Of a stretch of 64,000 bases of DNA, positions 1 to 45,145 are shown one piece after another; within the stretch, counting starts at the first letter, position 1, and the number at the start of each line of letters is the position of its first letter. Both the position numbers and the translations under genes were made by a program. Under the pieces are notes generated by a model. That model did not search any database, had not been told where the DNA came from, and saw only the letters and a program-made list of their open reading frames with translations. The DNA is taken from positions 1,426,001-1,490,000 of the forward strand of contig MCFH01000003.1 of the NCBI GenBank assembly GCA_002104945.1, read 5' to 3'. This DNA is from Piromyces finnis finn. Taxonomy: Eukaryota; Fungi; Neocallimastigomycota.

Positions 1-3000
1 TATTTATTATAAAATAAACATATGATATTATTAGTATATATATCTTTTGAATTAATATTTATAAATAAATTCATACTCTTTCTTCTACAGGGTTTTCAAC
101 AAATGAAATACTTTTAGGGAAAACTGTGGTTTTATTGGTTTCTGCATTAATGTTATGTTGAATTTCATTTTTAGTTGTAGCTATTTTTTTAATTACTGGA
201 ATAGAAGTGACATTTATCTTTTGATTATCTTCTGAATACTCACTTTGAGTAATTGCACTATTTTGTGAATTATTTTGAATTTCAAAATTACTTTCGCAAC
301 CTATATTAATGAAGAAAGCACTATTAATATTTTTAATTCAACAAGACTAAAATATTTATAAATTATACCTAAACTAGAATCACCAATAGAAATTGATGAA
401 CCGTTCATTAAAGTACTTGCTGTATTTATTAAATAAAAATAGTAATATTTTACAAAAAGGTCTAAGTAACTAATTGATCTATCATATTTATAAAGAAAAT
501 TTATTATAATACTGATGATTAACTACTTACCATAAATATTATTATTAATATTATTATTTTTTATAATTGGTACAGACTTTGATTTTTGTTTAAGTTGAGT
601 ACTATTTTTATCATTATCATGTATTACCATATCCGATTTTTGTTTTGATATAATGGTATTTTCTGTCTTATTTAATTCATGAGAATCAGAAATTTCTGTA
701 AGATTTTCTGATGGTAGTCTTGGGAAACTTATACTAGAATCATGATTTAATGTATTTACAGATATTTCTTTTTTTATTACTGTGGTTTGTTGTGAATGAC
801 TACTGTCATTGACATTATTTGAATGTGACAATTCTGAATTACTTTCTATATCTACTTTTGAATCCCTTATCGTTGAATTATTGTTTCTCTCATTATTATT
901 TAAATGAATATTAATATTATTTGTGTTTGAATTATTGGAATTAATGATTGGTAGTGATTCCTCTTCTTTCTTATTAACCACTTCATTATTAACTTCTTTG
1001 GGAATGTTTGTATTAGATGTTGTTGTATTGTTAGATATAGTTGGAAATAATGTGTTTTCTTTGGATTTTGAAGTATCTGAAGTATTTTTATTATCGAATT
1101 TTGGTTCATCACTAAATAAAAATGATAGTTTACTTTCAACCTTTATTAATTAAATAAATATTTAATAAAATTATTATTATATGTTAATAAAAATTATTTA
1201 TATTATTAATATAATATGAAAAAAATATAATTTAATAATATAAAATTTTTATTAGAATCTTACAGGCTTTTTTTGTTGAACATTATCATCATCATCTAAT
1301 AAGAATGACGCTTTCTTTTTTTCCGGTTTAGTATTATTTATTGTATTAGTTGTTGGATTATCACTAAATAATGAATTAATAAAATTTTCTGTTGCATTAT
1401 TATTAGTATTTCTTCTAGAATTAATTGATGTTCTTCTACGACGTCCTCCACCCGCTAAAAAGGAAGGGATAAATGAATCATTATCATCTTCATTATTTGC
1501 TAAATTTATATCTAAACCTGAATCTTTTGTATTTTTATCATTTTCCTTTTTAATATTAGTACTTAAATCAAAAAGTGGGGATGAATTTTCATTATTATTG
1601 TTGTTGTTGTTGTTGTTGTTATTATTATTATTATTATTTAATGAAGATGAAAATGGAAAATGATAATTATCATCATTAACTTTTCTATTATTATCATTAA
1701 TATTTTCAAGACTATTTATATTACTATTCTCATAACTTTGCTCATAATTTTGTTCATAGTCTTGTTCATAGTTTTGTTCTTCTTCCCCATAATTATTACT
1801 ATTGATAGTATTATTATTATTACTTAAGGATGAGAATGGATAATGATAATTAGTATTATTTTCAATAGTATTGTTTTTAGAAATTGTATCTGAATTATCT
1901 TTTAAAAATGATGGAATATCATTATTTTCTTTTCTTGATGATGCAAACGGAAATTTATATTCTATATCATTTTCTTGTTTAGAATCATTACTATTAATGT
2001 TATTTCTTGTTGATGAAAATGGAAAAGTATTACTTTCTTTTTCGTTTTTATTAAAGTTAAATAAAGATGTTTCATTTTTTTCTTCTGATAAAAATGGTAA
2101 AATTGGTTTTTTATTTCTATTATATTGATAGTTATTTTTTAATTAGAATTATAATAATAGATATAATAGATAGGAACAAATTTTAATTATACATCTACTA
2201 TATTTTATGTATTTAAAATGAAAAACTTTCAAATAATATTTACTCTTGTTTATTATTATTTTTTTTTCCAAATCCCAAACCAGCTAATATATCATCGTCA
2301 TCATTATCATTTAATATACTCATACCTGAAAACTAGATAAAAATTCAAAAATATTTTTTAATGAGCATATTAAAATTGCATAGGGTTATTAACCCTTATA
2401 ACAATATTAAAATAATTATATAAATTTTAAATTTAATACTAACGGAATCATTATCTTTAATTGGTGAATTAAACCCTGTTGCTCTTCTTCCATCTAAACT
2501 ATTGTTAATATCACTTTTTCTGGATGGTGAAGTAATATTAATATTGGTATTATTATCATTTTTTAAAAAAGAAAAAGGTTCTGAATTATTATTATTTATT
2601 GGTTCTGGAGATTTTGTTTCAGTTGTATGATTAAATATGAAATTTTTAAAATTATTCTCTTCTGTTTTTGGTTCTGGAGATTTTGTTTCACTTGTATGAT
2701 TAAATATAAAATTTTTAAAATTACTTTCATCTGTTTTTGGTTCTTTATCTTTATTATCATCAAAACTCCATAATGGTTTTTCAGTATCCTTTAAAAAAAA
2801 ATTTATTTTAAATTAATATTAATCCAATTCAAACAAACAAATGAATTATTTTTTTTTTCTTTCTATCATTTGATTATATTAAATATTAATATTTTATACA
2901 TACTGTTACACCTTTTCAATTATTATTAATACATATAAATATTAATAATTTATCACAATGATATAATACAAAAAAAAATAAAACAACATTATTAAATAAT

Positions 3001-3428
3001 TATTAGTAAAAATATCAGATAATTTAATAATTAAACATTATTATAAATAATAATAAAAGTGAAAAATAGCTTTTTGATAATAACTTGGTTTTGGTTCTGG
3101 TTTATTTTGAAAAGTATTTTCAAATTTAAAATCATCATCAAAATCATTTAATGAATCTAATATTTTATTAGGATCATAATCATTATTTCCAAATAAAGTA
3201 TTTTCTTCCTTTTTACTTTCCTATTCAATTAAAAGCACAAAATTCAAAAGAAAATTTTACATTTAAATATTTTTAGCAATACATATAAATAATAAATATT
3301 AATCTCACTCAACTTACTTTATTGAATATGTTATAATCTTCTTTCTTTTCAGTTTCATTGTCAAATTTATCGATATCGGAACCTAATATATCATTAAAAT
3401 CATCATCATCAAAACTATTTATTGACAT
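1..3428 (-). CDS. Multi-exon hypothetical low-complexity (N/S/D-rich) protein, runs off the left window edge; possibly FBF1-like
   Basis: ATG at 3428 (MSINSFDDDDFNDILGSDIDKF...). Open N/S/D-rich exons (e.g. ORF 523-981) are separated by GT-AG introns. Peptides include DDDDILAGLGFG and FIPSFLAGGGRRRR. Exon boundaries not all resolved; family assignment weak. Confidence 0.6.
2601..2745 (-). repeat. 69-bp (23-aa) tandem duplication inside the coding exon of the left-edge gene
   Basis: ggttctggagattttgtttca... recurs at 2601 and 2670; encodes NFKNFIFNHT[S/T]ETKSPEP twice. Confidence 0.85.
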
Positions 3429-4723
3429 TTTTTATTTAAATTTGATATTATGAAAATATTATATTGATATGGAAATAAAAATTGGAAATAATCTAAATGT
3501 TTATTTATAATTATTTTTTACTATTAATAATCTCTCTCTCTTTTTTTTTTTTTTTTTTCTTATTTTTTTTATAATAAAAGATTTTAAAATTATTTTAAAT
3601 AAAATATTACAATTGTAATTAAATAATGTAAATTTAAAATATCAACAAACAATTTCACTATTTTTAATTAATAAATAGGATTGGAACTTTAATTATATCA
3701 ATTAATAAATTAAATGCTGCGCCTAACTTTATTTAATATTTTTTTTATTCTCTCAAATAAAATCTCAAAAAATAATAAAGTCGTGGTATTATACACATTT
3801 TAACTTCAATTCTATTTATATCTTAATATTAATAATATATATAATATTTTGATTCAATTAATTATAAGTTATTATTGATACTATTGATGATGTTATATAT
3901 AATTTTATTTATTTCTTTTTTATTTATTAAGAAATTGTTTTTCTTTTTCTTTTTTTTAATTAATATAAAAATGATAATAGCAATGAAATTTATAAAAAGG
4001 TAATTTATTATTATTTTATATTATATAAATGAGAAAGAATTTATTATTGATATTATTGTTATTGCTGTTATATAAAAATCAATACGTCATTCTTTTTGCA
4101 TAAAGAGTATAAAGTTTTTGATATATTTAAAATATTAATTTTTAAGTTAATAATACTTTATTTTTTTTTTATATGTATTTAAAGATATATATTTCTTTTA
4201 TTTAAAAGAAATATTATTATTATTTATTATATTTTGTATTATATATTATTTTTGCTTTATTTTATTCTATTCTATTCTTTTTTTTTTTTTTTTTTTTTTT
4301 GTTTCTATTGTAAAAATAAATGTAAAATTTATATAAAATTAAAATTATCTTTTATTAAAAATATTATATAATGATATTTGAATTATAAATAAGTTTTAAT
4401 AAATAAATAAATTAAATAAATAATAAAGTAGTATTTGTAATTTCTTTTTTCTTTTTTTCTTTTAATTTTTTTCTTACAATTTCTGTTTAATCGTATTAAG
4501 ATTTATTCAGGCTAACTTATATTACGAGAGGTTGAAAATTTTTCAAGCAATTATTATATAGGAAAATCAAAATTAATAGATTTACTAAAAAATTTTTCCT
4601 TCTGTTTTTCATAATTTCATCTACAATTTATATTAAGAGTATTTTCCTTTCTTAATAATAAAGTTTATTATAATTAATATAATTCTTATCCCCCTTTTTT
4701 TATGGATATAACTTTATACAGAT

Positions 4724-7700
4724 TTAAAAAAGCATTTTTGGGAATTTAGAAATTAACAATTTAGCTTTCTTTGCAATAGCTTCTGGAACAAGACCAAAGT
4801 GTTCAAAAATCTTCTTAGCTGAAGCTGACATGCCAAATGAATCAATACCAACAGACATATGAGCATATTTAGCCCAACCAAAGGTTGAAGCAGCTTCAAC
4901 ACTAAGAATTGGAATTCCTTTTGGTAATACCTTATTACAATAACTCTTACCTTGAGAATCAAATAAAGATAAGCATGGTAATGATACAACACGAGCTGGA
5001 ATATTATCTTTTTTTAATAACTCTGCAGCTTCAACACATAATGATACTTCAGAACCAGTACCAGCTAAAATAACCTTTGGATTTGGTTCGTCTTGTAAAA
5101 TATAACCACCTTTTAAAGCATTTTCAATAGATGATCCTTTTAAATGTGGTACATTTTGACGAGTTAAACACAAAACAGATGGTGTTTCCTTACTAGTTAA
5201 TGCTTGATAATAAGCAGCTGAAACTTCATTACCATCAGCTGGACGAATGACATTTAAATTTGGTTGAGCTCTTAAAGCTGCAAAAGTTTCAATAGGTTGA
5301 TGAGTTGGACCATCTTCTCCAACTCCGATAGAATCATGAGTCATAATATAAACAACTTGATGCTTAGATAATGAACTTAAACGAACAGCACCAGAAGCAT
5401 AACTTGATTAATATATTATTTTTGATATATATTAATTTTTTTATCAAGGTTTATAAAATAAATTTAAAATATAAAAGATAAATATATAATGTTATAAAAT
5501 AGTACATATATATATATTTAATTTAAAATTACTTTATAAAGTTTAAAAATGTAGAACCAAATGGAATAAGACCACATCCATAAGCAGCCATGCCATTCAT
5601 AACAGCAGCCATTCCATGTTCTCTAACACCATAATGGAAGTAACGACCAGAATAATCCCCAATACCAGAACCAGTCTATATTTTTTTAAAATGAAATATA
5701 TAATTAAAAATGTATATTTAAATAATACAATTTTTAAATATATAAATTGCATTTTAATATTATATTTTTAAATATTTCAAAATTTTCAAAATATATAAAA
5801 ATATAAAATAATAAAAAAAAAAAAAAAGAATTTACTGCTTGGAAATCCTTAGCATTAGTCCAACGAGTAAGATTTGAGCCAGTTAAATCAGCTGAACCAC
5901 CAATAAACTCTGGTAAAGCATCACAAATATTATTAAGGACACATTCAGATAATTTTCTTTTAAAAATATATTTGAATTAATGTTAATTTTAATATTTTCG
6001 ATAATAATAATTAAATATTTTTATAATAAATTATCAATTATTCATTTTAATTACCTAGTAGCCATTGGTTTATCAGCTGGTGTGTATCTTGGTAATAATT
6101 TTTCCCAACCCTTAACTAAGTCACCTCTTAAACGTCTTCTAATTTCTTTAGCCTTTTTAATATTAGAATATATATAATATTTTAATAAAAAAGGAAAACT
6201 AATAAATATTTTATCACTATTTCATAGTTTATTTTTTATTATTCAATAAGCAACTATTAAAAAAGTCTTTTCTATTGATAATCACTTCTTCTGGATATTG
6301 TATTGAATATTTGTCAAAAAGACTATTCCATTCCTTTTCATAGTTAACTCCTTTACGTGTAAGCTTATCATAAAAAGCACGAACCTAAAAAATTATATAT
6401 TCATTATTGTATTTTGTAAATCACCATCTGAAAAAGATAACTTTATATTTGAAATAAAAATAATTACATCCTTTGGAATATCAAATGTTTTAGTTGGATC
6501 TAAATTGAAAAGCTGCTTAACATTGGCAATTTCTTCGGTCTTAAGTGGGTTTCCATGAGCTTTTGGAGTACCTTGATTTTTTGAACCATAACCGATTGTA
6601 GTACTTTTAATTAAAAAAAAATAATTAATATGTGACATATTTTTTTAAATGCTATATTTATTGAATTATTAATTTATATTTTGGAATATATATATATATA
6701 TATACCGAACATAGATAAGAGTTGGTTTGCTTAATTCTTTTTTAGCTTCTTCAATGGCATTGGCAATAGCATCTAAATCACTATCACCATCGTCAACTTT
6801 AAGAACTTGCCAACCGTAAGCCTTAAAACGAGCACATACATCTTCTGTGAATTGTACACGAATTTCACCTATTATCATAATTAAATTCAATGTAATGTAT
6901 CATTTTTTTTTAAAAAATTTATAATTAATAATATATATTATTAATATTTCAATTATTTTAATTATCATGAATATTTTTTTAGTAAAAGAGAAAAAAAAAT
7001 TACCATCAATTTGAATGTTGTTGGCATCATAAAGAGCGATTAACTTACCCAACTTGAAGTGACTATTAAATTATAATAATAATAATAATTTTTGAAAAAT
7101 TCATCAGTACACGGCAATGCTATTATTAAAACGACTACAAATATAAATAATTACCCAGCCATTGAAGCAGCTTCAGAAGAAACACCTTCTTGTAAACAAC
7201 CATCGCCAACAATGGTATAAGTATAATTATTAAATAATTCAATTCCTGGACGATTGTAAATTGATGCTAAATGAGCTTCAGCAATAGCTAAACCAACAGC
7301 ATTACTAAAGCCTTGACCTAATGGACCAGTGGTAACTTCAATACCATCAGTAACACCACGTTCTGGATGTCCTGGGGTACTTTTATATAAAAATTAAGAA
7401 AATTTAATATTTTGTTTAATAAAAATGAAGAAAAGAAAAAATAGAAACTAACATGCTTAAATATTGTCTGAAATTTTTTAAATCATTTAAAGTTATTTTG
7501 TAACCTAATAAATGGTTTATTACATATTGAAGAGTACAACCATGACCATTGGATAAAACAAATCTATCACGATTAATCTATTAATTAAATTTTAAAAAAT
7601 TTTCGTAATATTCAATATGTTTTTTTTTTTTTTTTTTTTAAAATAAAAAAAATAAATATTGATTTTAATGAATATTTTTGAAATCATCATAATTTAATTA

Positions 7701-31103: not shown

Positions 31104-33560
31104 TTAATAGATCTTTGAGCATTTTGAATTAATTTCTTGACATTTAGAAGCTAAACTTTCAGTGTATGGTTGTGACCAACAGTCATTTAATTCTTCGTAA
31201 CATAATTTTGCCATCTTATTCTTACAGTCATAATCGTTTGAATCACAACTGTAATAATCAATTTCTGGTGATGAGGTTGGAGCTATAACTGTTGTTGTTG
31301 TCTTGGTAATAGTTTTAGTTCTTGTTGTAGTTGGAATGGATTTGGTACTTGTAGTGGTTGGAACGGATTTAGTACTTCTTGTAGTAGTTGGAATGGATTT
31401 GGTAGTAGTAGTGGTTGGAATAACCTTGACAGAGGTGGTAGTAGTAGTTGGAATAACCTTGACAGAGGTGGTAGTAGTGGTTGGAATAACCTTGACAGTG
31501 GTGGTAGTAGTGGTTGGAATAACCTTGACAGAGGTGGTAGTGGTTGGAATAACCTTGACTGAGGTGGTAGTAGTAGTTGGAATAACCTTGACTGAGGTGG
31601 TAGTAGTAGTTGGAATAACCTTAACAGAAGTGGTAGTAGTTGAAATAACCTTGACTGAAGAAGTGGTGGTAGTAAATGGAATATTAGTTAATGGACTTTT
31701 AGTAGTAATTACTGGTGGTGGATTCTTAGAAGTAGTAGTTGAAGTATATGGAACTTTAGAAGTGATGTAAGTAGTTGGTGGAACCTTAGTAGTAGTGGTG
31801 GTTGGTGGTGGGGATTTAGTAGAGGAAGTTGAGGCAGAGGAAATAACAGTGGTGGTAGTAGATTCACTTGAACTTGAAGATTCGACTTCAATGTTTACAC
31901 TGGAATCAGCTGTCCATCCGTAAAGAGTTTCAATCTCTTCAATAAGTTCATAAGCAGCTTCAACATGAGATTGGTGAGCTGGATGCCAGTCAACAGCCTT
32001 ACCATTCTTTGCAATATTTTGAACATTAAATTTGAAGGCATTAACCTTTTCATCACCAGTTTCTGCTTTGTAATTATTAACAGCTTCTTCAACTTGTGGA
32101 TAAAGTTCTTGACCCATAATACCAAGAGTACAGAGAATTTCTGAATCTGGATAAGTGGATCTGATTTTACCTATAAATTCTTGGTATTCAGCAACAAAGG
32201 CAGCAACTTCTGACTTCTTCTTTTCTGAACTCTTAATTCCTTGCATGTATGAATTATCATTAGTACCAAGATTAATAACAATAAGATCTGGAATAAAGTC
32301 TTCAGAGTTCCATGAAACAGTCTTAATTTGAGTAATATCACTTCCAAATTGGTTCCAGTAGGAGAAACCAAGTTTGTCGTAATATTGTGGAAGAGCTGAA
32401 ATAGTGTTTCTTTCACCATCAACAGTATAACCAGAAATTATACCGAAACCACTGTAGGAAACCATACTATAATCAGCATTAAACTTCTTAGCAACCTTGT
32501 AAGCAAAAGACTTAGTACCATCTTCATTCTTAGTTGAGAATGTATCTTTATCGGTACCATCAACACCATAAGCACAAGTAATAGAATCTCCAATAAATTC
32601 AATCTTCTTACTATTAGCTGAAGTTGGTTCAATCTTATCAGAATCAGATTTAATACCATAAATTCTAACTGTACTTTGAGCACATTCAGAAATCTTAATA
32701 AGACTAACAACATGTTCAGAAGCTTCATCAAAAACAATATCTACTTCTTCCTTCTTTGAAAGAAGAGTTACAGAATAAAGTTCTCCATCAGTAAAGATCT
32801 TAAAACGAGCTGGATCACCATCAACTTCAAGATCAATTGTTGTTTGTTTACCTGTAAATTTATATTCAATTCCACTGTCAGTAAGACCAAACCAAAGGAA
32901 TCCCTTTTCTTCGTCATAATTAGCTCTACCAATGATTTTTACATTGTCCTTAGTTGGTTTGAATATGCCATTACTTGAGGCACTTGAAGTTGGCATAGTT
33001 TTAGTGGAAGTAGTAGTAGTTGGAATAACCTTAACGGAAGTAGTGGTAGTTGGAATAACCTTGACGGAGGTAGTGGTGGTTGGAATAACCTTGACGGAGG
33101 TAGTGGTAGTTGGAATAACCTTAACGGAAGTAGTGGTAGTTGGAATAACCTTGACGGAGGTAGTGGTAGTTGGAATAACTTTGACGGAGGTAGTGGTGGT
33201 TGGAATAACCTTGACGGAGGTTGTAGTAGTTGGAATAACTTTGACTGAAGTAGTGGTGGTTGGAATAACTTTAACTGAAGTTGTGGTAGTTTTGGCTGTA
33301 GTAGTTATTACATTTTGTTGTGGACTACCAGTGTAAGACCAAATTTCATTACATATGCTATTTAATTCATTACATTTAGAATAATCAGTTTCAGTTTTCC
33401 AGCATTCATTTGCTTTTTCAAAACAAAGAGTGCTTTGTTTTTGCTTACAAGAATAGTCTGAAGCTTCACAAACAAGATATGGATTGTTTGCTCTTTTTTC
33501 TATAATTGGAATTGCAGATACTGCACTTAATAAAGTAAATAGTGCAAAATTTAATTTCAT
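31104..33560 (-). CDS. Secreted CE2-type SGNH acetyl-esterase flanked by Thr-rich linkers and two 6-Cys modules (818 aa, intronless)
   Basis: Signal peptide + IIEKR. Catalytic region ~31910-32975 has KIEFIGDSITCAYG, SYSGFG, VINLGTND, DWHP (SGNH blocks I, II, III, V) preceded by a beta-sandwich-like CE2 N-domain (KIIGR...SGIEYKFTG). Confidence 0.88.
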   Translation of the reverse strand: MKLNFALFTLLSAVSAIPIIEKRANNPYLVCEASDYSCKQKQSTLCFEKANECWKTETDYSKCNELNSICNEIWSYTGSPQQNVITTTAKTTTTSVKVIPTTTTSVKVIPTTTTSVKVIPTTTTSVKVIPTTTTSVKVIPTTTTSVKVIPTTTTSVKVIPTTTTSVKVIPTTTTSVKVIPTTTTSTKTMPTSSASSNGIFKPTKDNVKIIGRANYDEEKGFLWFGLTDSGIEYKFTGKQTTIDLEVDGDPARFKIFTDGELYSVTLLSKKEEVDIVFDEASEHVVSLIKISECAQSTVRIYGIKSDSDKIEPTSANSKKIEFIGDSITCAYGVDGTDKDTFSTKNEDGTKSFAYKVAKKFNADYSMVSYSGFGIISGYTVDGERNTISALPQYYDKLGFSYWNQFGSDITQIKTVSWNSEDFIPDLIVINLGTNDNSYMQGIKSSEKKKSEVAAFVAEYQEFIGKIRSTYPDSEILCTLGIMGQELYPQVEEAVNNYKAETGDEKVNAFKFNVQNIAKNGKAVDWHPAHQSHVEAAYELIEEIETLYGWTADSSVNIEVESSSSSESTTTTVISSASTSSTKSPPPTTTTTKVPPTTYITSKVPYTSTTTSKNPPPVITTKSPLTNIPFTTTTSSVKVISTTTTSVKVIPTTTTTSVKVIPTTTTTSVKVIPTTTTSVKVIPTTTTTTVKVIPTTTTTSVKVIPTTTTTSVKVIPTTTTTKSIPTTTRSTKSVPTTTSTKSIPTTTRTKTITKTTTTVIAPTSSPEIDYYSCDSNDYDCKNKMAKLCYEELNDCWSQPYTESLASKCQEINSKCSKIY
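31390..31660 (-). repeat. 30/33-bp coding tandem repeat, (TTTT[T]SVKVIP)n, second linker
   Basis: Same unit as 33005-33280 with one extra Thr codon in most copies. Confidence 0.95.
33005..33280 (-). repeat. 30-bp coding tandem repeat, (TTTTSVKVIP)n, about 9 units
   Basis: Unit gtagtggtagttggaataaccttgacggag seen on the + strand. Confidence 0.95.
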
Positions 33561-37862: not shown

Positions 37863-39859
37863 CTATATTAGGTGATAATACATATTGATATAATAATTAA
37901 TAAAAATAATAAAATATATATATAAAAATATAAAAATAAAATAATTATTAAAGTTGCATAAATGTTCAATGAACTCTGCAATTTGTACTATGTGGGATTG
38001 ATCCCTACCTAATAAATTAAATGAAATAAAAAAGAGAAGTAACAGGTATAATGGTGTGGTGTCCACTAAACTCTCCCATGAGTTCATAATGTTTTCATTC
38101 GAAGAAATACTAACATTGAACCCTGTGTACAGAACACTGAGAATGTTCCTTTGCCATATCGGTACGACGTCGTCGCTCTTGATTACGTTAGGTGTCTTAC
38201 TAAACCTATCAAAAAGTAGCCTCATAGAGCTACTAATGATAGGGACTGTTTTAGTAAGAGAAGCCGCGAGACCCTCTACATATGAAACATGAGACCCCGA
38301 TGAACTGTAAAGCTGTTCATTCAAATGTCTTTGTTCAGCCTTATTGAGACCCTCTACATATGGAACATGAGACCCCGATGAACTGTAAAGCTGTTCATTC
38401 AAATGTCTTTGTTCAGCCTTATTGATTCGTAGCTCATCATAAGCTAAAGTTCCACCAAGAAGGAACGTAAAAATATAGTTATAAATTGTTTTTCTTACTT
38501 CCATTTCAGGGAGTAAGTATGTGATGAATTGATTCTTATATTTATTGTAAAAAAGGGTAAAAAAAATCGTCAAGAAAGCTAAGTGAAGAAGTTCTGTATT
38601 CAGAGAATGCATGACATTCTAAAATCCAATGATAAAAAGATTGTTCATCATATCCACAACATGGACAGACACGAGGGCAGTCAGGAGTAACTCTATTACT
38701 GGCAATAGTAATTCGGGTAGTATTTTCATAACCGCATCGAATACGAATAATCCAGGTAATTCCTAAATTTAAGTGAGGTTTGTTGAGACCGATATGCATT
38801 AGGCGATTTGAATTAAGGAATTTGTTGTTAGTATATCTGAGGGCTTTACTTCCATTATTTAGGCTACTATTATTCCAATAATATTCTCTAATATCTTTAG
38901 TACTTTTAATATTTATTTTCATAAGCTTCTTATGTAGTGAACAAGATTCTTTGGCCCAAAAGTAATGAGACATGGGAGGAATAGATCGGACGAGATCTTT
39001 AATTATACAATTTGATTTTCTCCATTTAACAAAGCATTTCACTTGTTGCGCAGCACAAATACCTGAAAGGGTAGGGATCTTCATATCTCTTGTAAGAGCA
39101 TACAGACTAATAAATGAATTTCGTTCAAAAACAAAATCTTTGTTATTAAAACTTTTATTGTGAAAGCTATTGACACTCCATAAAACAGCAGTATTGATAA
39201 GAGATTGGACTCTTCTAGTTCTATTTTTGTTGGAACCAAGTAAAGGAGCATAATAAGAGACTTTGCTTAAAATATAAGAATGAATTACTATGTTTTTTAA
39301 GCCAATAGGAACACAATTGTTGGTGAGGAAGTTCTTAAAAGAGAATAAAGATTTCTGAACTTTTATGTACATATTAGACAGAATAGGAGTCAAAGAAAGA
39401 TCTTCGTCGAATGGGATTCCAAGATAAGTATAGCAAGAAACCTTTGGAATCGAGTGCATACCGATGTAAAATGTTGGGTCGACATAACTAGGGGATCTAT
39501 TAAAGTTGATAGGTTTAACAACAATAGTTGCACATTTATTTATTCCAAAAGACATTTCATTTAAATTAGCCCAATCAAGGACTAGATTGAGAATCTTTTG
39601 AAGGTTCTTCTTACTAGGAGCAATCAAAACAATGTCATCAGCGAAAAGGCCACCACAACAACGTTTATTACCTAAGCTAACTCCAAGCCTTTCACATTTA
39701 TTTAAAATATCATTGATAAAGAGGTTAAACAGTATAGGAGAAAGAGGACATCCTTGTCTTACACCACGGTTTATAGGGAATTCATTGGAAAGCATATCCA
39801 AGAAACGTGCACGAGCTTTAGAGGTTGAGTAGAGATTATTGAGAAAATCAAAACATTTA

Positions 39860-39862
<3 letters not shown>
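37863..39862 (-). mobile_element. LINE copy B, 3' part: RT core, thumb, CCHC knuckle, C-terminal region
   Basis: RGVRQGCPLSPILFNLFINDIL, GGLFADDIVL, YTYLGIPF, CPCC-x8-H-x4-C. Continues by frameshift at an A-run near 38550 into the 249-aa ORF (IFTFLLGG, aligning with IFKFLLGG of copy A). Confidence 0.92.
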
Positions 39863-39901
<39 letters not shown>

Positions 39902-41659
39902 GGCATCAAATATTTTAAGCTTTATTATTAATTTAATTAAAATTATAATACATGTAATAAAAAAATTAAAATTAAAATAAAAATAAAAAAAAATATGTTT
40001 AAATAAACACAAATGAATAAAAATTGGGTATAATGTATTCTAGTAATTTTAATTAAAGTAAGAAAGCCACTATCATACTAAAGTATAATAATTGTATTTG
40101 ACTTCCAATGGGACACCGAGCCAAAGATCAAAATTTTGTCATGGAACAAAATTATGATCTCCATTGGTTGCGCTGGCCCTCGTGGCCTGTCTTACTGTTT
40201 CTTCAGCATTGACGCTCTTGGATGTTGCTTCAAACCTTTTGAACATTGACCATTGCTGGCCAATAGCAAAAGGCATGATTTTGGTTAGAAGTTCCGCTGT
40301 TACCGTCAAGAATGGTGTTCCTTCATTAGTACCAGATTGAATCTGATGCTTACAAAGTTCTTTCCATTCCCTTGAATTGTAATTGATATTGTTAAAACTT
40401 CTTCCCCCAAGAAGGAATTTAAATATTTTACTGCACACACTAGAATAATCATACACATTAATATTCACCGGATTATTAGAACTATTACTATCATTAACTA
40501 AATTACTATCTAAATTAGAATTATTATCTTCACTATTGCTATCATTACTAATATTGTTATTTCTATTATTGCTATTATTACTATTGTTACTATTACTATT
40601 GTTACTATTACTATTGTTATTACTACTATTGTTACTATTACTATTGTTATTACTACTATTGTTACTATTACTATTAATGTTATTACTATCTCTACTGATA
40701 TTATCAATTTCATTATTATTGATAGGACTATTGGAATTACGTTGACTGAAAAAATTTAATAGCTGGACTATGGAATCATAATGTTTAATACGGATATCTC
40801 TAAATGTTGGACAATCTAATAACCAATGTTTAATACTTTGATCTCCACACTTGCAACATGGACAGTAGTTAGGACAAACTGGATCAACAAATTTAGCAGC
40901 TTTGGCAACTCTAGCATCCAACTTGTATCCGCTTCTTGCTTTCAATAGCCAGTAGAAGCCATAGGCAAACTCTGGGTACTCATAACATAATTTAATAAAA
41001 TCTTTAGTTTCAATAAATTTATTATCATCATAATATTGCGCTTTGATTGAATTCCCTTTGAGATCTTTCCAATAAAAGTTTTTAACTGCTTTAACATCTC
41101 CATGTTTCTTTAATTTTTTATCAAGTGTCCTACTTGATTTGCACCACGTGTATTTTCTAAATTTAGGAATGTAATTGACAAGGTGTGAGATAATACAATT
41201 TGAGTTTTTCCATTTGTTAAAACATCTAACCTGAGCTAACGCACATTTGGCTGACAATGGAGGAATATTCAAATCTTTTGAAAGAGTATAAAGATATAAA
41301 CGATACAGCTTTATGAACTCCGGCAACCCATCGTATTCCTTTGTTAACATGCTTCTGAGCAATCCTAGACCTAGCTTTGTTGGATCCAAGTAATGGTGCA
41401 AAGTATGAAACTCTGCTAATCACTTGTGAGTTAAGTACTAGTTTTTTGAAAGGAATAGGAATATTAGGATTTCTTAAGAATTTACTGACTGAGAAAAGCC
41501 CTTTCAAAACCTTGTTATTAAGAGCTTTAATTACTGGTTTAAGGGACAGATTCTTATCAAATGGAACACCAAGATAAGTATAACAATCAGTAGTTGGAAT
41601 GGGTTGTCCTGCTAAGTAAAATGTTGGATCTCTCTTGATCTGATTTTCTATTGATTCAG
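39863..41659 (-). mobile_element. 5'-truncated LINE copy A inserted into copy B, with a 36-nt poly(A) tail and 13-bp TSD
   Basis: T36 at 39863-39898. Direct repeat AAAACATTTACCA at 39850-39862 and 41660-41672. Encodes thumb (YTYLGVPF), LLGSNK, CCHC knuckle, stop at 40139; one frameshift near 41290. Confidence 0.95.
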
Positions 41660-42406: not shown

Positions 42407-45145
42407 TTAAGCGTAGATTTTAGAACATTGAGCATTAATAGCATTACATTCAGAAGCTAAACTATCAGAATATGGCTTCTTCCAGCATTCTTGAAGATCG
42501 GCATAGCATTTTTGAGACATTTTGTTCTTACAATCATAGTCATTAGCACCACAGCTAGTGTAGTCAGTTGAAGTTGAAGTTGATGGAACATTTGGTTGAG
42601 AGGTAGCAATTTGTTTAGTAGCAGAAGTAACAATTTGTTTAGTAGCAGAAGTTGTTGGGAGTTGCTTAGAGGCAGCAGAAGTTGTTGGGAGTTGCTTAGA
42701 GGCAGCAGAGGTGGTTGGGAGTTGCTTAGAGGCAGCAGAGGTGGTTGGAAGTTGCTTAGAAGCAGCAGAGGTGGTTGGGAGTTGCTTAGAAGCAGCAGAG
42801 GTGGTTGGGAGTTGCTTAGAAGCAGCAGAGGTGGTTGGGAGTTGCTTAGAAGCAGCAGAGGTGGTTGGGAGTTGCTTAGAAGCAGCAGAGGTGGTTGGGA
42901 GTTGCTTAGAAGCAGCAGAGGTAGTTGGGAGTTGCTTAGAGGCAGCAGAGGTAGTTGGGAGTTGCTTAGAGGCAGCAGAGGTAGTTGGGAGTTGCTTAGA
43001 GGCAGCATTGTTAGTGGTTGGGAGTTGCTTAGAAGCAGCAGAGGTAGTTGGGAGTTGCTTAGAGGCAGCATTGTTAGTGGTTGGGAGTTGCTTAGAAGCA
43101 GCAGAGGTAGTTGGGAGTTGCTTAGAGGCAGCAGAGGTGGTTGGGAGTTGCTTAGAGGCAGCAGAGGTGGTTGGGAGTTGCTTAGAGGCAGCAGAGGTGG
43201 TTGGGAGTTGTTTAGAGGCAGCAGAGGTGGTTGGGAGTTGCTTAGAGGCAGCAGAAGTGGTTGGGAGTTGCTTAGAGGCAGCAGAAGTGGTTGGGAGTTG
43301 CTTAGAGGCAGCAGAAGTGGTTGGGAGTTGCTTAGAGGCAGCAGAAGTGGTTGGGAGTTGCTTAGAGGCAGCAGAAGTGGTTGGGAGTTGCTTAGAGGCA
43401 GCAGAAGTGGTTGGGAGTTGCTTAGAAGCAGCAGAAGTGGTTGGGAGTTGCTTAGAGGCAGCAGAGGTGGTTGGGAGTTGCTTAGAGGCAGCAGAGGTGG
43501 TTGGGAGTTGCTTAGAGGCAGCAGAGGTGGTTGGGAGTTGCTTAGAGGCAGCAGAGGTGGTTGGGAGTTGCTTAGAGGCAGCAGAGGTGGTTGGAAGTTG
43601 CTTAGAGGCAGCAGAGGTGGTTGGAAGTTGCTTAGAGGCAGCAGAGGTGGTTGGAAGTTGCTTAGAGGCAGCAGAGGTGGTTGGAAGTTGCTTAGAGGCA
43701 GCAGAGGTGGTTGGAAGTTGCTTAGAAGCAGCAGAGGTGGTTGGAAGTTGCTTAGAAGCAGCAGAGGTGGTTGGGAGTTGCTTAGAGGCAGCAGAAGTAG
43801 TTGGAAGTTGCTTAGAGGCAGCAGAGGTGGTTGGGAGTTGCTTAGAGGCAGCAGAGGTAGTTGGGAGTTGCTTAGAGGCAGCAGAGGTGGTTGGGAGTTG
43901 CTTAGAGGCAGCAGAGGTGGTTGGGAGTTGCTTAGAGGCAGCATTGTTAGTGGTTGGGAGTTGCTTAGAAGCAGCAGAAGTGGTTGGGAGTTGCTTAGAG
44001 GCAGCAGAAGTGGTTGGGAGTTGCTTAGAGGCAGCAGAAGTGGTTGGGAGTTGCTTAGAGGCAGCAGAGGTGGTTGGGAGTTGCTTAGAGGCAGCAGAGG
44101 TGGTTGGAAGTTGCTTAGAGGCAGCAGAGGTGGTTGGAAGTTGCTTAGAGGCAGCAGAGGTGGTTGGGAGTTGTTTAGAGGCAGCAGAGGTAGTTGGGAG
44201 TTGCTTAGAGGCAGCAGAGGTGGTTGGAAGTTGCTTAGAGGCAGCAGAAGTAGTTGGAAGTTGCTTAGAGGCAGCAGAGGTGGTTGGGAGTTGCTTAGAG
44301 GCAGCAGAAGTAGTTGGGAGTTGCTTAGAGGCAGCAGAGGTAGTTGGGAGTTGCTTAGAGGCAGCAGAGGTAGTTGGGAGTTGCTTAGAGGCAGCAGAGG
44401 TAGTTGGGAGTTGCTTAGAGGCAGCAGAGGTGGTTGGAAGTTGCTTAGAGGCAGCAGAGGTGGTTGGAAGTTGCTTAGAGGCAGCAGAAGTGGTTGGGAG
44501 TTGCTTAGAGGCAGCAGAAGTGGTTGGGAGTTGCTTAGAGGCAGCAGAGGTAGTTGGGAGTTGCTTAGAGGCAGCATTGTTAGTGGTTGGGAGTTGCTTG
44601 GAAGCAGCAGAGGTGGTTGGGAGTTGCTTAGAAGCAGCAGAGGTGGTTGGGAGTTGCTTAGAAGCAGCAGAGGTGGTTGGAAGTTGCTTAGAAGCAGCAG
44701 AGGTGGTTGGAAGTTGCTTAGAAGCAGCAGAGGTGGTTGGAAGTTGCTTAGAGGCAGCAGAGGTGGTTGGAAGTTGCTTAGAGGCAGCAGAAGTGGTTGG
44801 GAGTTGCTTAGAGGCAGCAGAAGTGGTTGGAAGTTGCTTAGAAGCAGCAGTAGTAACAATTTGCTTAGAAGCAGAAGTAATTTGTGGTTGAGATGGTTGA
44901 ACTGGTTGTGGATTTCCAGTGTAAGACCAGATTTCATTACATAAGTTGTTTAATTCAGAACATTTTTGGTAATCACCAGAACTCCAACATTCATTGGCCT
45001 TTTGTTGGCAAAGACTAGCTTGTTCTTGCTTACAACTGTAATCTTCAGTTCCACAAATAAGGTATGGGTTGCTAGCTCTCTTTTCCATAATTGGAAGAGC
45101 AGAAACACAACTGGCAACAGCTAATAAAACTAAACTGAATTTCAT
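42407..45145 (-). CDS. Secreted mucin-like protein with no catalytic domain: 6-Cys module, (TTSAASKQLP)n, 6-Cys module (912 aa, intronless)
   Basis: Signal peptide + IMEKR. N- and C-terminal Cys modules align closely with those of 31104-33560 (NPYL[VI]C...CNEIWSYTG; DYxSC..NDYDCKNKM..C...CSKIY). Confidence 0.92.
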   Translation of the reverse strand: MKFSLVLLAVASCVSALPIMEKRASNPYLICGTEDYSCKQEQASLCQQKANECWSSGDYQKCSELNNLCNEIWSYTGNPQPVQPSQPQITSASKQIVTTAASKQLPTTSAASKQLPTTSAASKQLPTTSAASKQLPTTSAASKQLPTTSAASKQLPTTSAASKQLPTTSAASKQLPTTSAASKQLPTTNNAASKQLPTTSAASKQLPTTSAASKQLPTTSAASKQLPTTSAASKQLPTTSAASKQLPTTSAASKQLPTTSAASKQLPTTSAASKQLPTTSAASKQLPTTSAASKQLPTTSAASKQLPTTSAASKQLPTTSAASKQLPTTSAASKQLPTTSAASKQLPTTSAASKQLPTTSAASKQLPTTSAASKQLPTTSAASKQLPTTSAASKQLPTTNNAASKQLPTTSAASKQLPTTSAASKQLPTTSAASKQLPTTSAASKQLPTTSAASKQLPTTSAASKQLPTTSAASKQLPTTSAASKQLPTTSAASKQLPTTSAASKQLPTTSAASKQLPTTSAASKQLPTTSAASKQLPTTSAASKQLPTTSAASKQLPTTSAASKQLPTTSAASKQLPTTSAASKQLPTTSAASKQLPTTSAASKQLPTTSAASKQLPTTSAASKQLPTTSAASKQLPTTSAASKQLPTTSAASKQLPTTSAASKQLPTTSAASKQLPTTSAASKQLPTTNNAASKQLPTTSAASKQLPTTNNAASKQLPTTSAASKQLPTTSAASKQLPTTSAASKQLPTTSAASKQLPTTSAASKQLPTTSAASKQLPTTSAASKQLPTTSAASKQLPTTSAASKQLPTTSAASKQLPTTSAASKQLPTTSATKQIVTSATKQIATSQPNVPSTSTSTDYTSCGANDYDCKNKMSQKCYADLQECWKKPYSDSLASECNAINAQCSKIYA
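42648..44849 (-). repeat. 30-bp coding tandem array, about 73 units
   Basis: Unit gaggtggttgggagttgcttagaggcagca on the + strand; variation almost all synonymous; four 33-bp TNN variants at 43006, 43069, 43942, 44575. Confidence 0.98.

Follow-up and report, generated by a model that had tools for sequence, protein, structure and literature searches.

A Candidate Bivalent Tether Protein with Two Six-Cysteine Caps and No Enzyme in the Anaerobic Gut Fungus Piromyces finnis

Introduction

What might a gut fungus do with a secreted protein that carries a small cysteine-rich module at each end of a very long repeat, and no enzyme at all? The question is raised by a gene of Piromyces finnis (Neocallimastigomycota), located in a stretch of 64,000 nucleotides that we analysed as a whole (contig MCFH01000003.1 of assembly GCA_002104945.1, positions 1,426,001 to 1,490,000, forward strand; hereafter the window, to which bare coordinates refer). 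A preliminary description of the gene had set out a signal peptide, a KR site, a module, about 73 copies of TTSAASKQLP and a second module, a layout we call a dumbbell, and had read the product as a tether or cross-linker. How these fungi hold their enzymes, and themselves, on plant fibre is only partly understood. We propose, with a probability of roughly 0.55, that the gene encodes a secreted, non-catalytic, mucin-like protein, acting as a bivalent O-glycosylated tether or matrix protein of the fungal surface. The proposal bears on a contested subject, as the cohesin partner of the fungal dockerin is debated and the attachment of cellulosomes to cells is unresolved (PMC8262932).

Results

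The gene (42407..45145, minus strand) is a single exon, an uninterrupted open reading frame (ORF) of 912 amino acids (aa) from ATG to TAA, with the stop codon at 42407-42409. Its product opens with a predicted signal peptide (residues 1-16, MKFSLVLLAVASCVSA; 45098..45145, minus strand), recognised by eye in the translation from basic residues at the start, a core of hydrophobic ones and a cleavage motif of small residues. The translation continues with a propeptide, LPIMEKR (45077..45097, minus strand), whose dibasic KR end suggests Kex2-type processing. There follows the predicted mature N-terminus, a six-cysteine module of 54 residues (24-77, NPYLIC...CNEIWSYTG; 44915..45076, minus strand), here called N-type and supported by genome search, alignments A1 and A3 and a tree. 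The linker of ~780 aa (42572..44914, minus strand) is, by translation and composition, rich in Ser, Thr and Ala, with one Lys and one Pro per unit and no acidic residues; it runs from a short Pro/Gln-rich stretch through the repeat to a short Ser/Thr stretch. The repeat itself was delimited by Tandem Repeats Finder as 73.2 copies of a 30-bp unit encoding TTSAASKQLP, with 95% matches (42644..44850, minus strand). A second, C-type module (residues 859-912, DYTSC...CSKIYA; 42410..42571, minus strand), supported by genome search and AlphaFold2, forms the extreme C-terminus, and the stop codon directly follows ...CSKIYA. Both ends have homologues elsewhere in the same genome, searched as an assembly of 56.46 Mb in 232 contigs. 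No enzyme and no other meaningful domain was found by Pfam at E<=10 in the whole protein or in either end, and the sole matches, Dicty_spore_N (E 2.4) and BAP (E 0.0064), are sub-threshold and were set aside as chance. The layout given in the preliminary description is therefore borne out by the intact ORF, the array and the blank Pfam result. Two plus-strand ORFs of 782 and 726 aa within the array lack a signal peptide and a module, and were dismissed as by-products of the repeat. The gene's surroundings have ~13-25% GC, with coding islands higher.

The array is conserved as a peptide. Cutting the translation at KQ(LP/IV/IA) gave 75 decapeptide-type units: 68 TTSAASKQLP, four TTNNAASKQLP and three edge variants. 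Behind the 68 identical units stand 15 DNA variants, whose differences fall on six sites, each a third codon position, and never alter the amino acid. Under neutrality only about one quarter of point changes would be synonymous, which argues that TTSAASKQLP is maintained as a peptide and not just as DNA. Variants can be spread by concerted evolution; alone, it cannot weed out the non-synonymous ones. The earlier remark that repeat variation is almost all synonymous can thus be sharpened: among canonical units it is purely so. Across the whole array we counted 19 DNA variants in irregular order with local runs (e.g. BBBBBB, JJJJJ, FFFF), and the longest exact self-match is 170 bp. Irregular order and short self-matches together mark a real array shaped by local unequal exchange, one that long reads can resolve.

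The composition of the linker is equally telling. Residues 83-852 (770 residues) include 300 Ser/Thr (39%), 76 Lys, ~10% Pro and no Asp or Glu, and the whole 912-aa protein has no N-x-S/T sequon; the linker is thus an O-glycosylation-type, strongly polycationic thread. In a short homologue, P0001, the linker is predicted by AlphaFold2 to be disordered (predicted local distance difference test, pLDDT, <50). The linker is then, as earlier suggested, O-glycosylatable in principle, and its composition is compatible with the mucin-type class of O-glycoproteins. Anaerobic gut fungi possess O-mannosylation genes (PMT1-4), and Thr-rich runs occur in their secreted enzymes (PMC6883316). The 150-200 nm previously proposed for the tether is a calculated value, obtained by assuming 0.25 nm for each residue (770 x 0.25 = ~190 nm). 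As to base composition, the repeat has a GC content at third codon positions (GC3) of 0.39 and a GC skew of 0.55, while GC3 is 0.22-0.24 in the gene's non-repeat ends and 0.14-0.28 in the other ORFs measured; its codons ACC, GCC, CTC and AAG are otherwise rare in this DNA. Biased gene conversion within the array, or else selection, may have raised the GC3. Codon bias was dropped as a proxy of expression, since even highly expressed genes of anaerobic gut fungi favour AT-rich codons (PMC6883316).

What, then, are the two ends? Searching the genome with either module returned ~30-40 copies. The N module matched itself at E 2.6e-35 and four other N-type copies at 4.5e-23 to 2.8e-15; the C module matched itself at E 3.8e-36, the copy in a neighbouring esterase at 1.2e-19, and at least 10 copies at 1.2e-19 to 1e-12. 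In the alignment of 30 genomic copies (A1), C7, C14, C22, C29, C42, C49 and I52 are invariant, Asp11, Lys15 and Trp30 nearly so (column 30 is aromatic, mostly W), and the module ends in I-[WY]; both modules of the dumbbell fit. The cysteine spacing is C-x6-C-x7-C-x6-C-x8..12-C-x6-C. Aromatic residues are conserved at columns 4, 12, 30 and 53, as well as at column 23 in the C-type only, and individual modules are net acidic (-1 to -5) with 5-8 aromatic residues each. With A1 as input and the dumbbell's C module as query, AlphaFold2 returned an N-terminal loop and two helices (12-30 and 36-50) at a mean pLDDT of 94.5, and the N and C modules of P0001 were both predicted as two-helix. Each ~52-residue module, acidic and rich in aromatic residues, is thus predicted as a helical hairpin, presumably locked by three disulfides. 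From the helix positions, Cys22 and Cys29 would face Cys49 and Cys42, while Cys7-Cys14 would tie down the N-terminal loop; at 100 degrees per residue, the aromatics at 12, 23 and 30 would form one stripe of helix 1, ~120 degrees from the cysteine face.

No informative structural relative emerged. Foldseek against the PDB retrieved generic helical hairpins only (best E 3.8). VIA-align over 48,161 chains likewise gave generic hairpins, with a best Z of 6.6, below the tool's meaningful level for helical models, and the best ESM Atlas score, 0.75, is noise. A PDB sequence search with the module profile yielded a lone match, a twin-Cx9C complex I subunit (E 0.06), attributed to chance. Known cysteine-rich families were considered and rejected as well. 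For the fungal dockerin CBM10 (PF02013; ~40 residues, with a Cys/Trp/Gly pattern), no CBM_10 match appeared at E<=10 on the whole dumbbell or its ends, and the positive control, a dockerin protein of the same genome (L050), was detected. CBM1 (PF00734; ~29-36 residues, four Cys) matched neither the dumbbell nor its relative P0013, and the true CBM1 of another relative, P0037, was detected at E 8.4e-11. CFEM has eight Cys and the module six, with no Pfam CFEM match on the dumbbell or the relatives tested. Membership of the pherophorins was discarded upon finding no Pfam pherophorin match and a rod of only 10% Pro, and a glycosylphosphatidylinositol-anchored wall glycoprotein upon inspection of the translation, which ends right after the last Cys with no hydrophobic tail.

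The module has a narrow taxonomic range. A profile search of 1.84 billion (1.84e9) cluster representatives at E<=0.001 returned 48 clusters only, one of them spurious (P0032, a fish immune-receptor-like protein matching profile positions 7-26 only) and 47 related. The named sources are Neocallimastix californiae, N. lanati, Anaeromyces robustus and Pecoramyces ruminantium, the rest being short environmental contigs from JGI/ENA; apart from the spurious match, all checked clusters come from anaerobic gut fungi or rumen samples. We found no description of the module in Pfam, the PDB or the literature searched. A word-index protein search with residues 1-95 was blank, but the same search overlooks a 68%-identical esterase paralogue present in the collection. 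The module is, as judged from these searches, an undescribed, lineage-restricted domain. Two relatives, P0013 and P0002 (Anaeromyces robustus ORX84523.1 and ORX87060.1), bear the automatic UniRef names "CBM1 domain-containing protein" and "CFEM domain-containing protein", neither domain being found by Pfam; these labels are likely mis-annotations caused by the cysteine pattern.

To what, in turn, is the module attached? The C-type module is the C-terminal appendage of ~25 secreted proteins in this genome, usually after a linker. It ends GH5 cellulases (L010, L012, L013, L048, L049 and L053), a PL1 pectate lyase (L017/L052) and an Agd3-type deacetylase (L032/L051). It also ends a 612-aa protein (L050:673-2508 = G000:C171:304673-306508, plus strand) comprising a signal peptide, a dockerin (CBM_10, E 9.8e-08) and a GH10 xylanase (E 2.7e-65). 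Since dockerin and module coexist in this protein, the module is not simply an alternative to the dockerin. In other genera the module ends a GH11 xylanase (P0015), S8 proteases (P0035 and P0036) and CE2 esterases (P0004 and P0020). At least eight further proteins have no enzyme and consist of a signal peptide, K-[TSQ]-[LI]-P repeats and a C-terminal module only. Taken as a whole, this distribution suggests that the module behaves like a targeting or binding appendage.

Unusual layouts were also encountered. P0037, from environmental JGI/ENA contigs, is a 424-aa protein in which Thr runs separate four tandem six-cysteine modules and a true CBM1 (E 8.4e-11) comes after them; contigs of 1.5-2.7 kb carry five near-identical copies of it, and its layout resembles that of a scaffoldin or an adhesin. 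The Agd3-type galactosaminogalactan deacetylase homologue (L051:2175-4049, minus strand; G000:C200) has CBM87, CE and C domains with the six-cysteine module at the end, and ~100 bp downstream a second copy lies in a 97-codon ORF (L051:1778-2068, minus strand), which could be a second exon or a duplicated fragment. At L043 (G000:C174:144000-153999; e.g. 2932-6180, plus strand), a cluster of secreted proteins alternates a divergent module (YLTC...CW..Y....C..LS..C..I) with a second Cys-rich domain (PSG..IP.SLL.YL.CPIGD..CKNGK). These proteins end in very basic Lys/Thr-rich tails, and their relatives include P0002, P0003 and P0007 in Anaeromyces. Finally, a module-capped repeat protein (L006:332-1381, plus strand; G000:C30) has poly-Asn units broken by single Trp residues (...GSKTLPTTTTTKSIQQT), an odd periodic motif.

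The N-type module has a far stricter context. The five best N-module matches in this genome all lie N-terminally after a signal peptide, and all belong to proteins that also end with a C-type module. Four are dumbbells without an enzyme: the 912-aa protein of the window (42407-45145, unit TTSAASKQLP) and proteins of 933 aa (L041:2878-5676, unit TSSGKTLPV), 1026 aa (L042:2619-5696, unit TSAGKTLPV) and 849 aa (L047:413-2959, unit TTTTSAVKTLP). Their lengths, 849-1026 aa, are similar and arise from units of 9, 9, 10 and 11 residues. This hints at selection on length, with the sample limited to four and P0001, a natural 160-aa mini-dumbbell with a 40-residue linker, being short. The fifth carrier is the neighbouring 818-aa paralogue (31104..33560, minus strand), 9 kb from the 912-aa gene, in whose translation an N-type and a C-type cap enclose T-rich K-V-I-P repeats flanking a CE2-type SGNH esterase; the 818-aa esterase named in the preliminary description is capped at both ends by the same modules. 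It has IPIIEKR at the position of LPIMEKR, and the C178 paralogues, the three other enzyme-less dumbbells, have no KR propeptide, their module starting straight after the signal peptide. Reverse-transcriptase remnants lie between the two genes of the window; these long interspersed nuclear element (LINE)-like ORFs (37863-41401, minus strand) contain stops and a long Asn/Ser-rich low-complexity insert. Elsewhere, P0014 is a Pecoramyces dumbbell with internal Cys modules, and N-type-capped esterases are represented by P0004, P0034 and P0045; P0004, a Neocallimastix-type orthologue of the 818-aa esterase, has CE2_N and Lipase_GDSL domains in Pfam.

The distinction between the two caps is old. In a maximum-likelihood tree of 50 modules, one branch parts N-type from C-type with support of 100/99, and N-types of several genera group together; the specialisation is thus older than the divergence of these genera. 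The N-type signature is NPYLxC...NEIWSY, with the end NEIWSY set against SKIW in the C-type, and at column 23 four of the five genomic N-type copies have Gln instead of an aromatic residue, the esterase copy keeping Phe. The earlier mention of two six-cysteine modules hence stands as to their presence, but the two ends are not equivalents: they are distinct, anciently separated subtypes. Within the tree, the C module of the 912-aa dumbbell groups with esterase-type C modules (98/93), and in the alignment its N module and the esterase copy are both of a short-loop form. Comparison of its N module with that of the neighbouring esterase gave a synonymous divergence (dS) of 0.88 and a non-synonymous divergence (dN) of 0.24 (dN/dS 0.27); for the C module, synonymous sites are saturated and dN is 0.29. 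By these values the duplication is old and both genes are under purifying selection, and the dumbbell is not a recently decayed esterase. That it might be a non-functional deletion derivative, a possibility raised earlier, is contradicted by this age and constraint, by the three further dumbbells without an enzyme, and by others in further genera (P0001 and P0014).

Such genes seem to have escaped annotation. In an exact-sequence look-up of ~15 billion proteins, the 818-aa esterase is present (NCBI, UniRef and EukProt) and none of the four enzyme-less dumbbells is found; similarly, the exhaustive profile search returned no representative of 850-1030 aa with two module matches. P0009, from another source, runs into a frameshifted repeat after its N module. 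The simplest explanation would be that the repeat genes of dumbbells were passed over or broken by gene callers, and differently drawn public models of them may exist. New in this analysis are the N-type subtype, the class of dumbbell genes without an enzyme, the polycationic K-x-L-P thread under peptide-level selection, and the union of module and dockerin in one protein.

Discussion

How could such a protein work? Upon secretion the signal peptide would be removed and the KR site probably processed, leaving an N-type cap at the mature N-terminus and a C-type cap at the C-terminus. The ~770-residue thread between them would be densely O-glycosylated, extended and polycationic. Both caps would then act as binding modules and the thread as their spacer, so that the dumbbell would act as a bivalent connector at the fungal surface or within the extracellular matrix, joining the wall or matrix with itself, with plant material or with other proteins that bear the module. 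On those other proteins the C-type cap would serve as an address tag, bringing ~25 secreted enzymes and K-x-L-P repeat proteins to the same ligand. We favour binding over inert capping because the module is added to complete enzymes, has internal tandem copies beside a CBM1, and conserves many aromatic residues. As for what is bound, a carbohydrate would be the leading candidate at slightly less than even odds, a protein (N-to-C pairing included) would have somewhat under a third of the weight, and some other ligand about a quarter. A polysaccharide, whether of the plant wall or of the fungal wall or matrix, would suit the aromatic stripe, the enzyme partners and the link to Agd3; the helical hairpin, the strict co-occurrence of N-type with C-type and the scaffoldin-like P0037 fit protein-protein pairing. 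The tether or cross-linker of the preliminary description appears a reasonable reading, to be widened to N-to-C self-assembly; a bridge from wall to substrate and a joining of enzymes would both be compatible with the sequence.

Several observations weigh against the tether proposal. Helical hairpins are unusual for carbohydrate-binding modules and are met more often in protein-protein docking. In the strongly reducing rumen, the module's disulfides are an assumption. Module and linker are not strictly coupled, as GH5 members lack K-x-L-P linkers, and with just 40 aa between its caps P0001 indicates that members of the family can do without a long spacer. The array length comes from one assembly, and scans of metagenome contigs with the N-type alignment and then with P0001 found nothing.

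The most serious alternative, in our view unlikely, is that the caps bind each other: N-type and C-type hairpins would pair as a four-helix bundle, dumbbells would polymerise head to tail into a glycoprotein gel or matrix, and enzymes with only a C-type cap would dock on free N-type caps, which would amount to a second assembly system that does not use dockerins. Every protein with an N-type also has a C-type, the subtypes are anciently distinct, and hairpins of helices are typically used for dimerisation or docking. P0037, with its four modules and true CBM1, is laid out like a small scaffoldin, and the dockerin-GH10 protein also bears a C-type cap. A few structural matches to the P0001 model span both modules (68-74 residues, ~20-160), a hint of packed hairpins; yet that model (AlphaFold2, eight-sequence alignment A2) has a predicted template modelling score of just 0.44 and a module pLDDT of ~80, so that packing is only weakly hinted at, and eight sequences are too few for covariation. 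Moreover, the genome holds five N-type against ~25 C-type modules, and with both subtypes net acidic there is no obvious charge complementarity, an idea that we rejected for that reason. Taken further, and more speculatively still, the dumbbells might found a second assembly system independent of dockerins. In this long shot, N-C pairing, or the binding of acidic aromatic caps to cationic K-x-L-P repeats, would let enzyme-less dumbbells polymerise into a rhizoid scaffold or gel displaying C-capped GH5, GH10, GH11, PL1, CE2, protease and Agd3 enzymes, the four dumbbell genes being the missing scaffold.

Other alternatives deny the caps a ligand, the array its length or the gene a function. That the modules are protease-resistant plugs with no ligand of their own, shielding a glycosylated thread (for lubrication, hydration or charge) from rumen exopeptidases, would suit their position exactly at the mature termini, their compact and presumably disulfide-locked predicted fold, and the peptide-level selection on the thread. 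We nonetheless hold it improbable: a linker and an inert cap would serve no purpose on GH5, GH10, GH11 or PL1 enzymes, P0037 and P0014 have internal tandem copies, and with aromatics conserved at six of ~52 positions (at five in the N-type), the module appears to have more of them than a two-helix core needs. Could the array instead be inflated or mis-assembled, the true gene being much shorter? Tandem repeats of 30 bp at 95% identity are hard to assemble, and the frameshifted repeat of P0009 comes from another source; but the gene sits inside a 1.65-Mb contig of the 232-contig assembly, the reading frame is kept across 2.2 kb, and the 19 irregularly ordered variants share no exact self-match above 170 bp. 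Three paralogues on another contig, in addition, have arrays of similar length built from different units, and an artefact is accordingly very improbable. Least probable of all, to the point of being hardly credible, is a non-functional leftover of the CE2 esterase dumbbell, drifting after the loss of its catalytic cassette. The kinship of both modules with the esterase type (the C module grouping at 98/93, the N module through its short-loop form), the esterase gene 9 kb away and the LINE remnants between would agree with such an origin. Yet the ORF runs unbroken over 2.7 kb and has both its signal peptide and its stop, and the duplicates are old (dS 0.88 to saturated) with dN/dS at 0.27 and six Cys kept in both modules. 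Neither would drift leave only synonymous changes among the 68 canonical units, and enzyme-less dumbbells recur three more times in the genome and in more genera.

The module and its dumbbells together make a candidate, open to testing, either for a wall, matrix or adhesion layer or for a second system of tethering. Proteomic and transcriptomic studies mapped to public protein sets would have missed the dumbbells, because the four genes are apparently absent there. The module, being small and confidently predicted as a compact fold, probably locked by disulfides, could be expressed and screened for ligands quickly, and is a possible part for synthetic enzyme display.

Comparison with Known Systems

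The nearest systems are those of the family itself. Copies of the module elsewhere match the dumbbell's C module in their six invariant Cys, their predicted pair of helices and their confinement to Neocallimastigomycota. In contrast with the enzyme-linked carriers, the dumbbell has no enzyme and has a second, N-terminal copy of a distinct N-type, a type restricted to dumbbell proteins. Like the fungal dockerin (CBM10) and scaffoldin, these small Cys-containing modules sit on linkers to secreted plant-cell-wall enzymes, and both are plausibly targeting devices; unlike the dockerin, the six-cysteine module has a different Cys pattern, a predicted helical fold and no CBM_10 match. Nor is it a dockerin substitute with the same partner, because a genuine dockerin and the module coexist in one protein (L050).

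The thread has its own counterparts. The repeat unit of xylanase B (XYLB) of Neocallimastix patriciarum reportedly contains K-T-L-P, like the K-x-L-P core throughout the module family. XYLB resembles the dumbbell in being a secreted anaerobic-fungal protein with a long non-catalytic tandem-repeat linker. Fifty-seven octapeptide repeats are reported for it (Black et al. 1994, cited in PMC3177772). Unlike the dumbbell, XYLB has a catalytic GH10 domain, and the module-bearing GH10 protein of the present genome is that of L050. In gel-forming mucins, lubricin and insect salivary glue proteins, an O-glycosylated Thr/Ser-rich repeat lies between small Cys-rich ends that mediate assembly or attachment. 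The dumbbell, however, has no VWD, CTCK, SMB or glue-family domains, and its likeness to these proteins is one of analogy, not homology; a sub-threshold New_glue match was seen in Pfam on the relative P0028 (E 0.0014).

Among all these, the closest architectural analogue is the pherophorin dumbbell of the Volvox extracellular matrix, in which globular domains flank a hydroxyproline-rich rod. The dumbbell has no sequence relationship to the pherophorins or hydroxyproline-rich glycoproteins of Volvox and Chlamydomonas: its ends are 52-residue helical hairpins, and its rod is rich in Ser, Thr, Ala and Lys with one Pro in ten, whereas that of pherophorins is polyproline. Pherophorins form a large lineage-specific family, some members of which polymerise into an insoluble network (PMC9818292).

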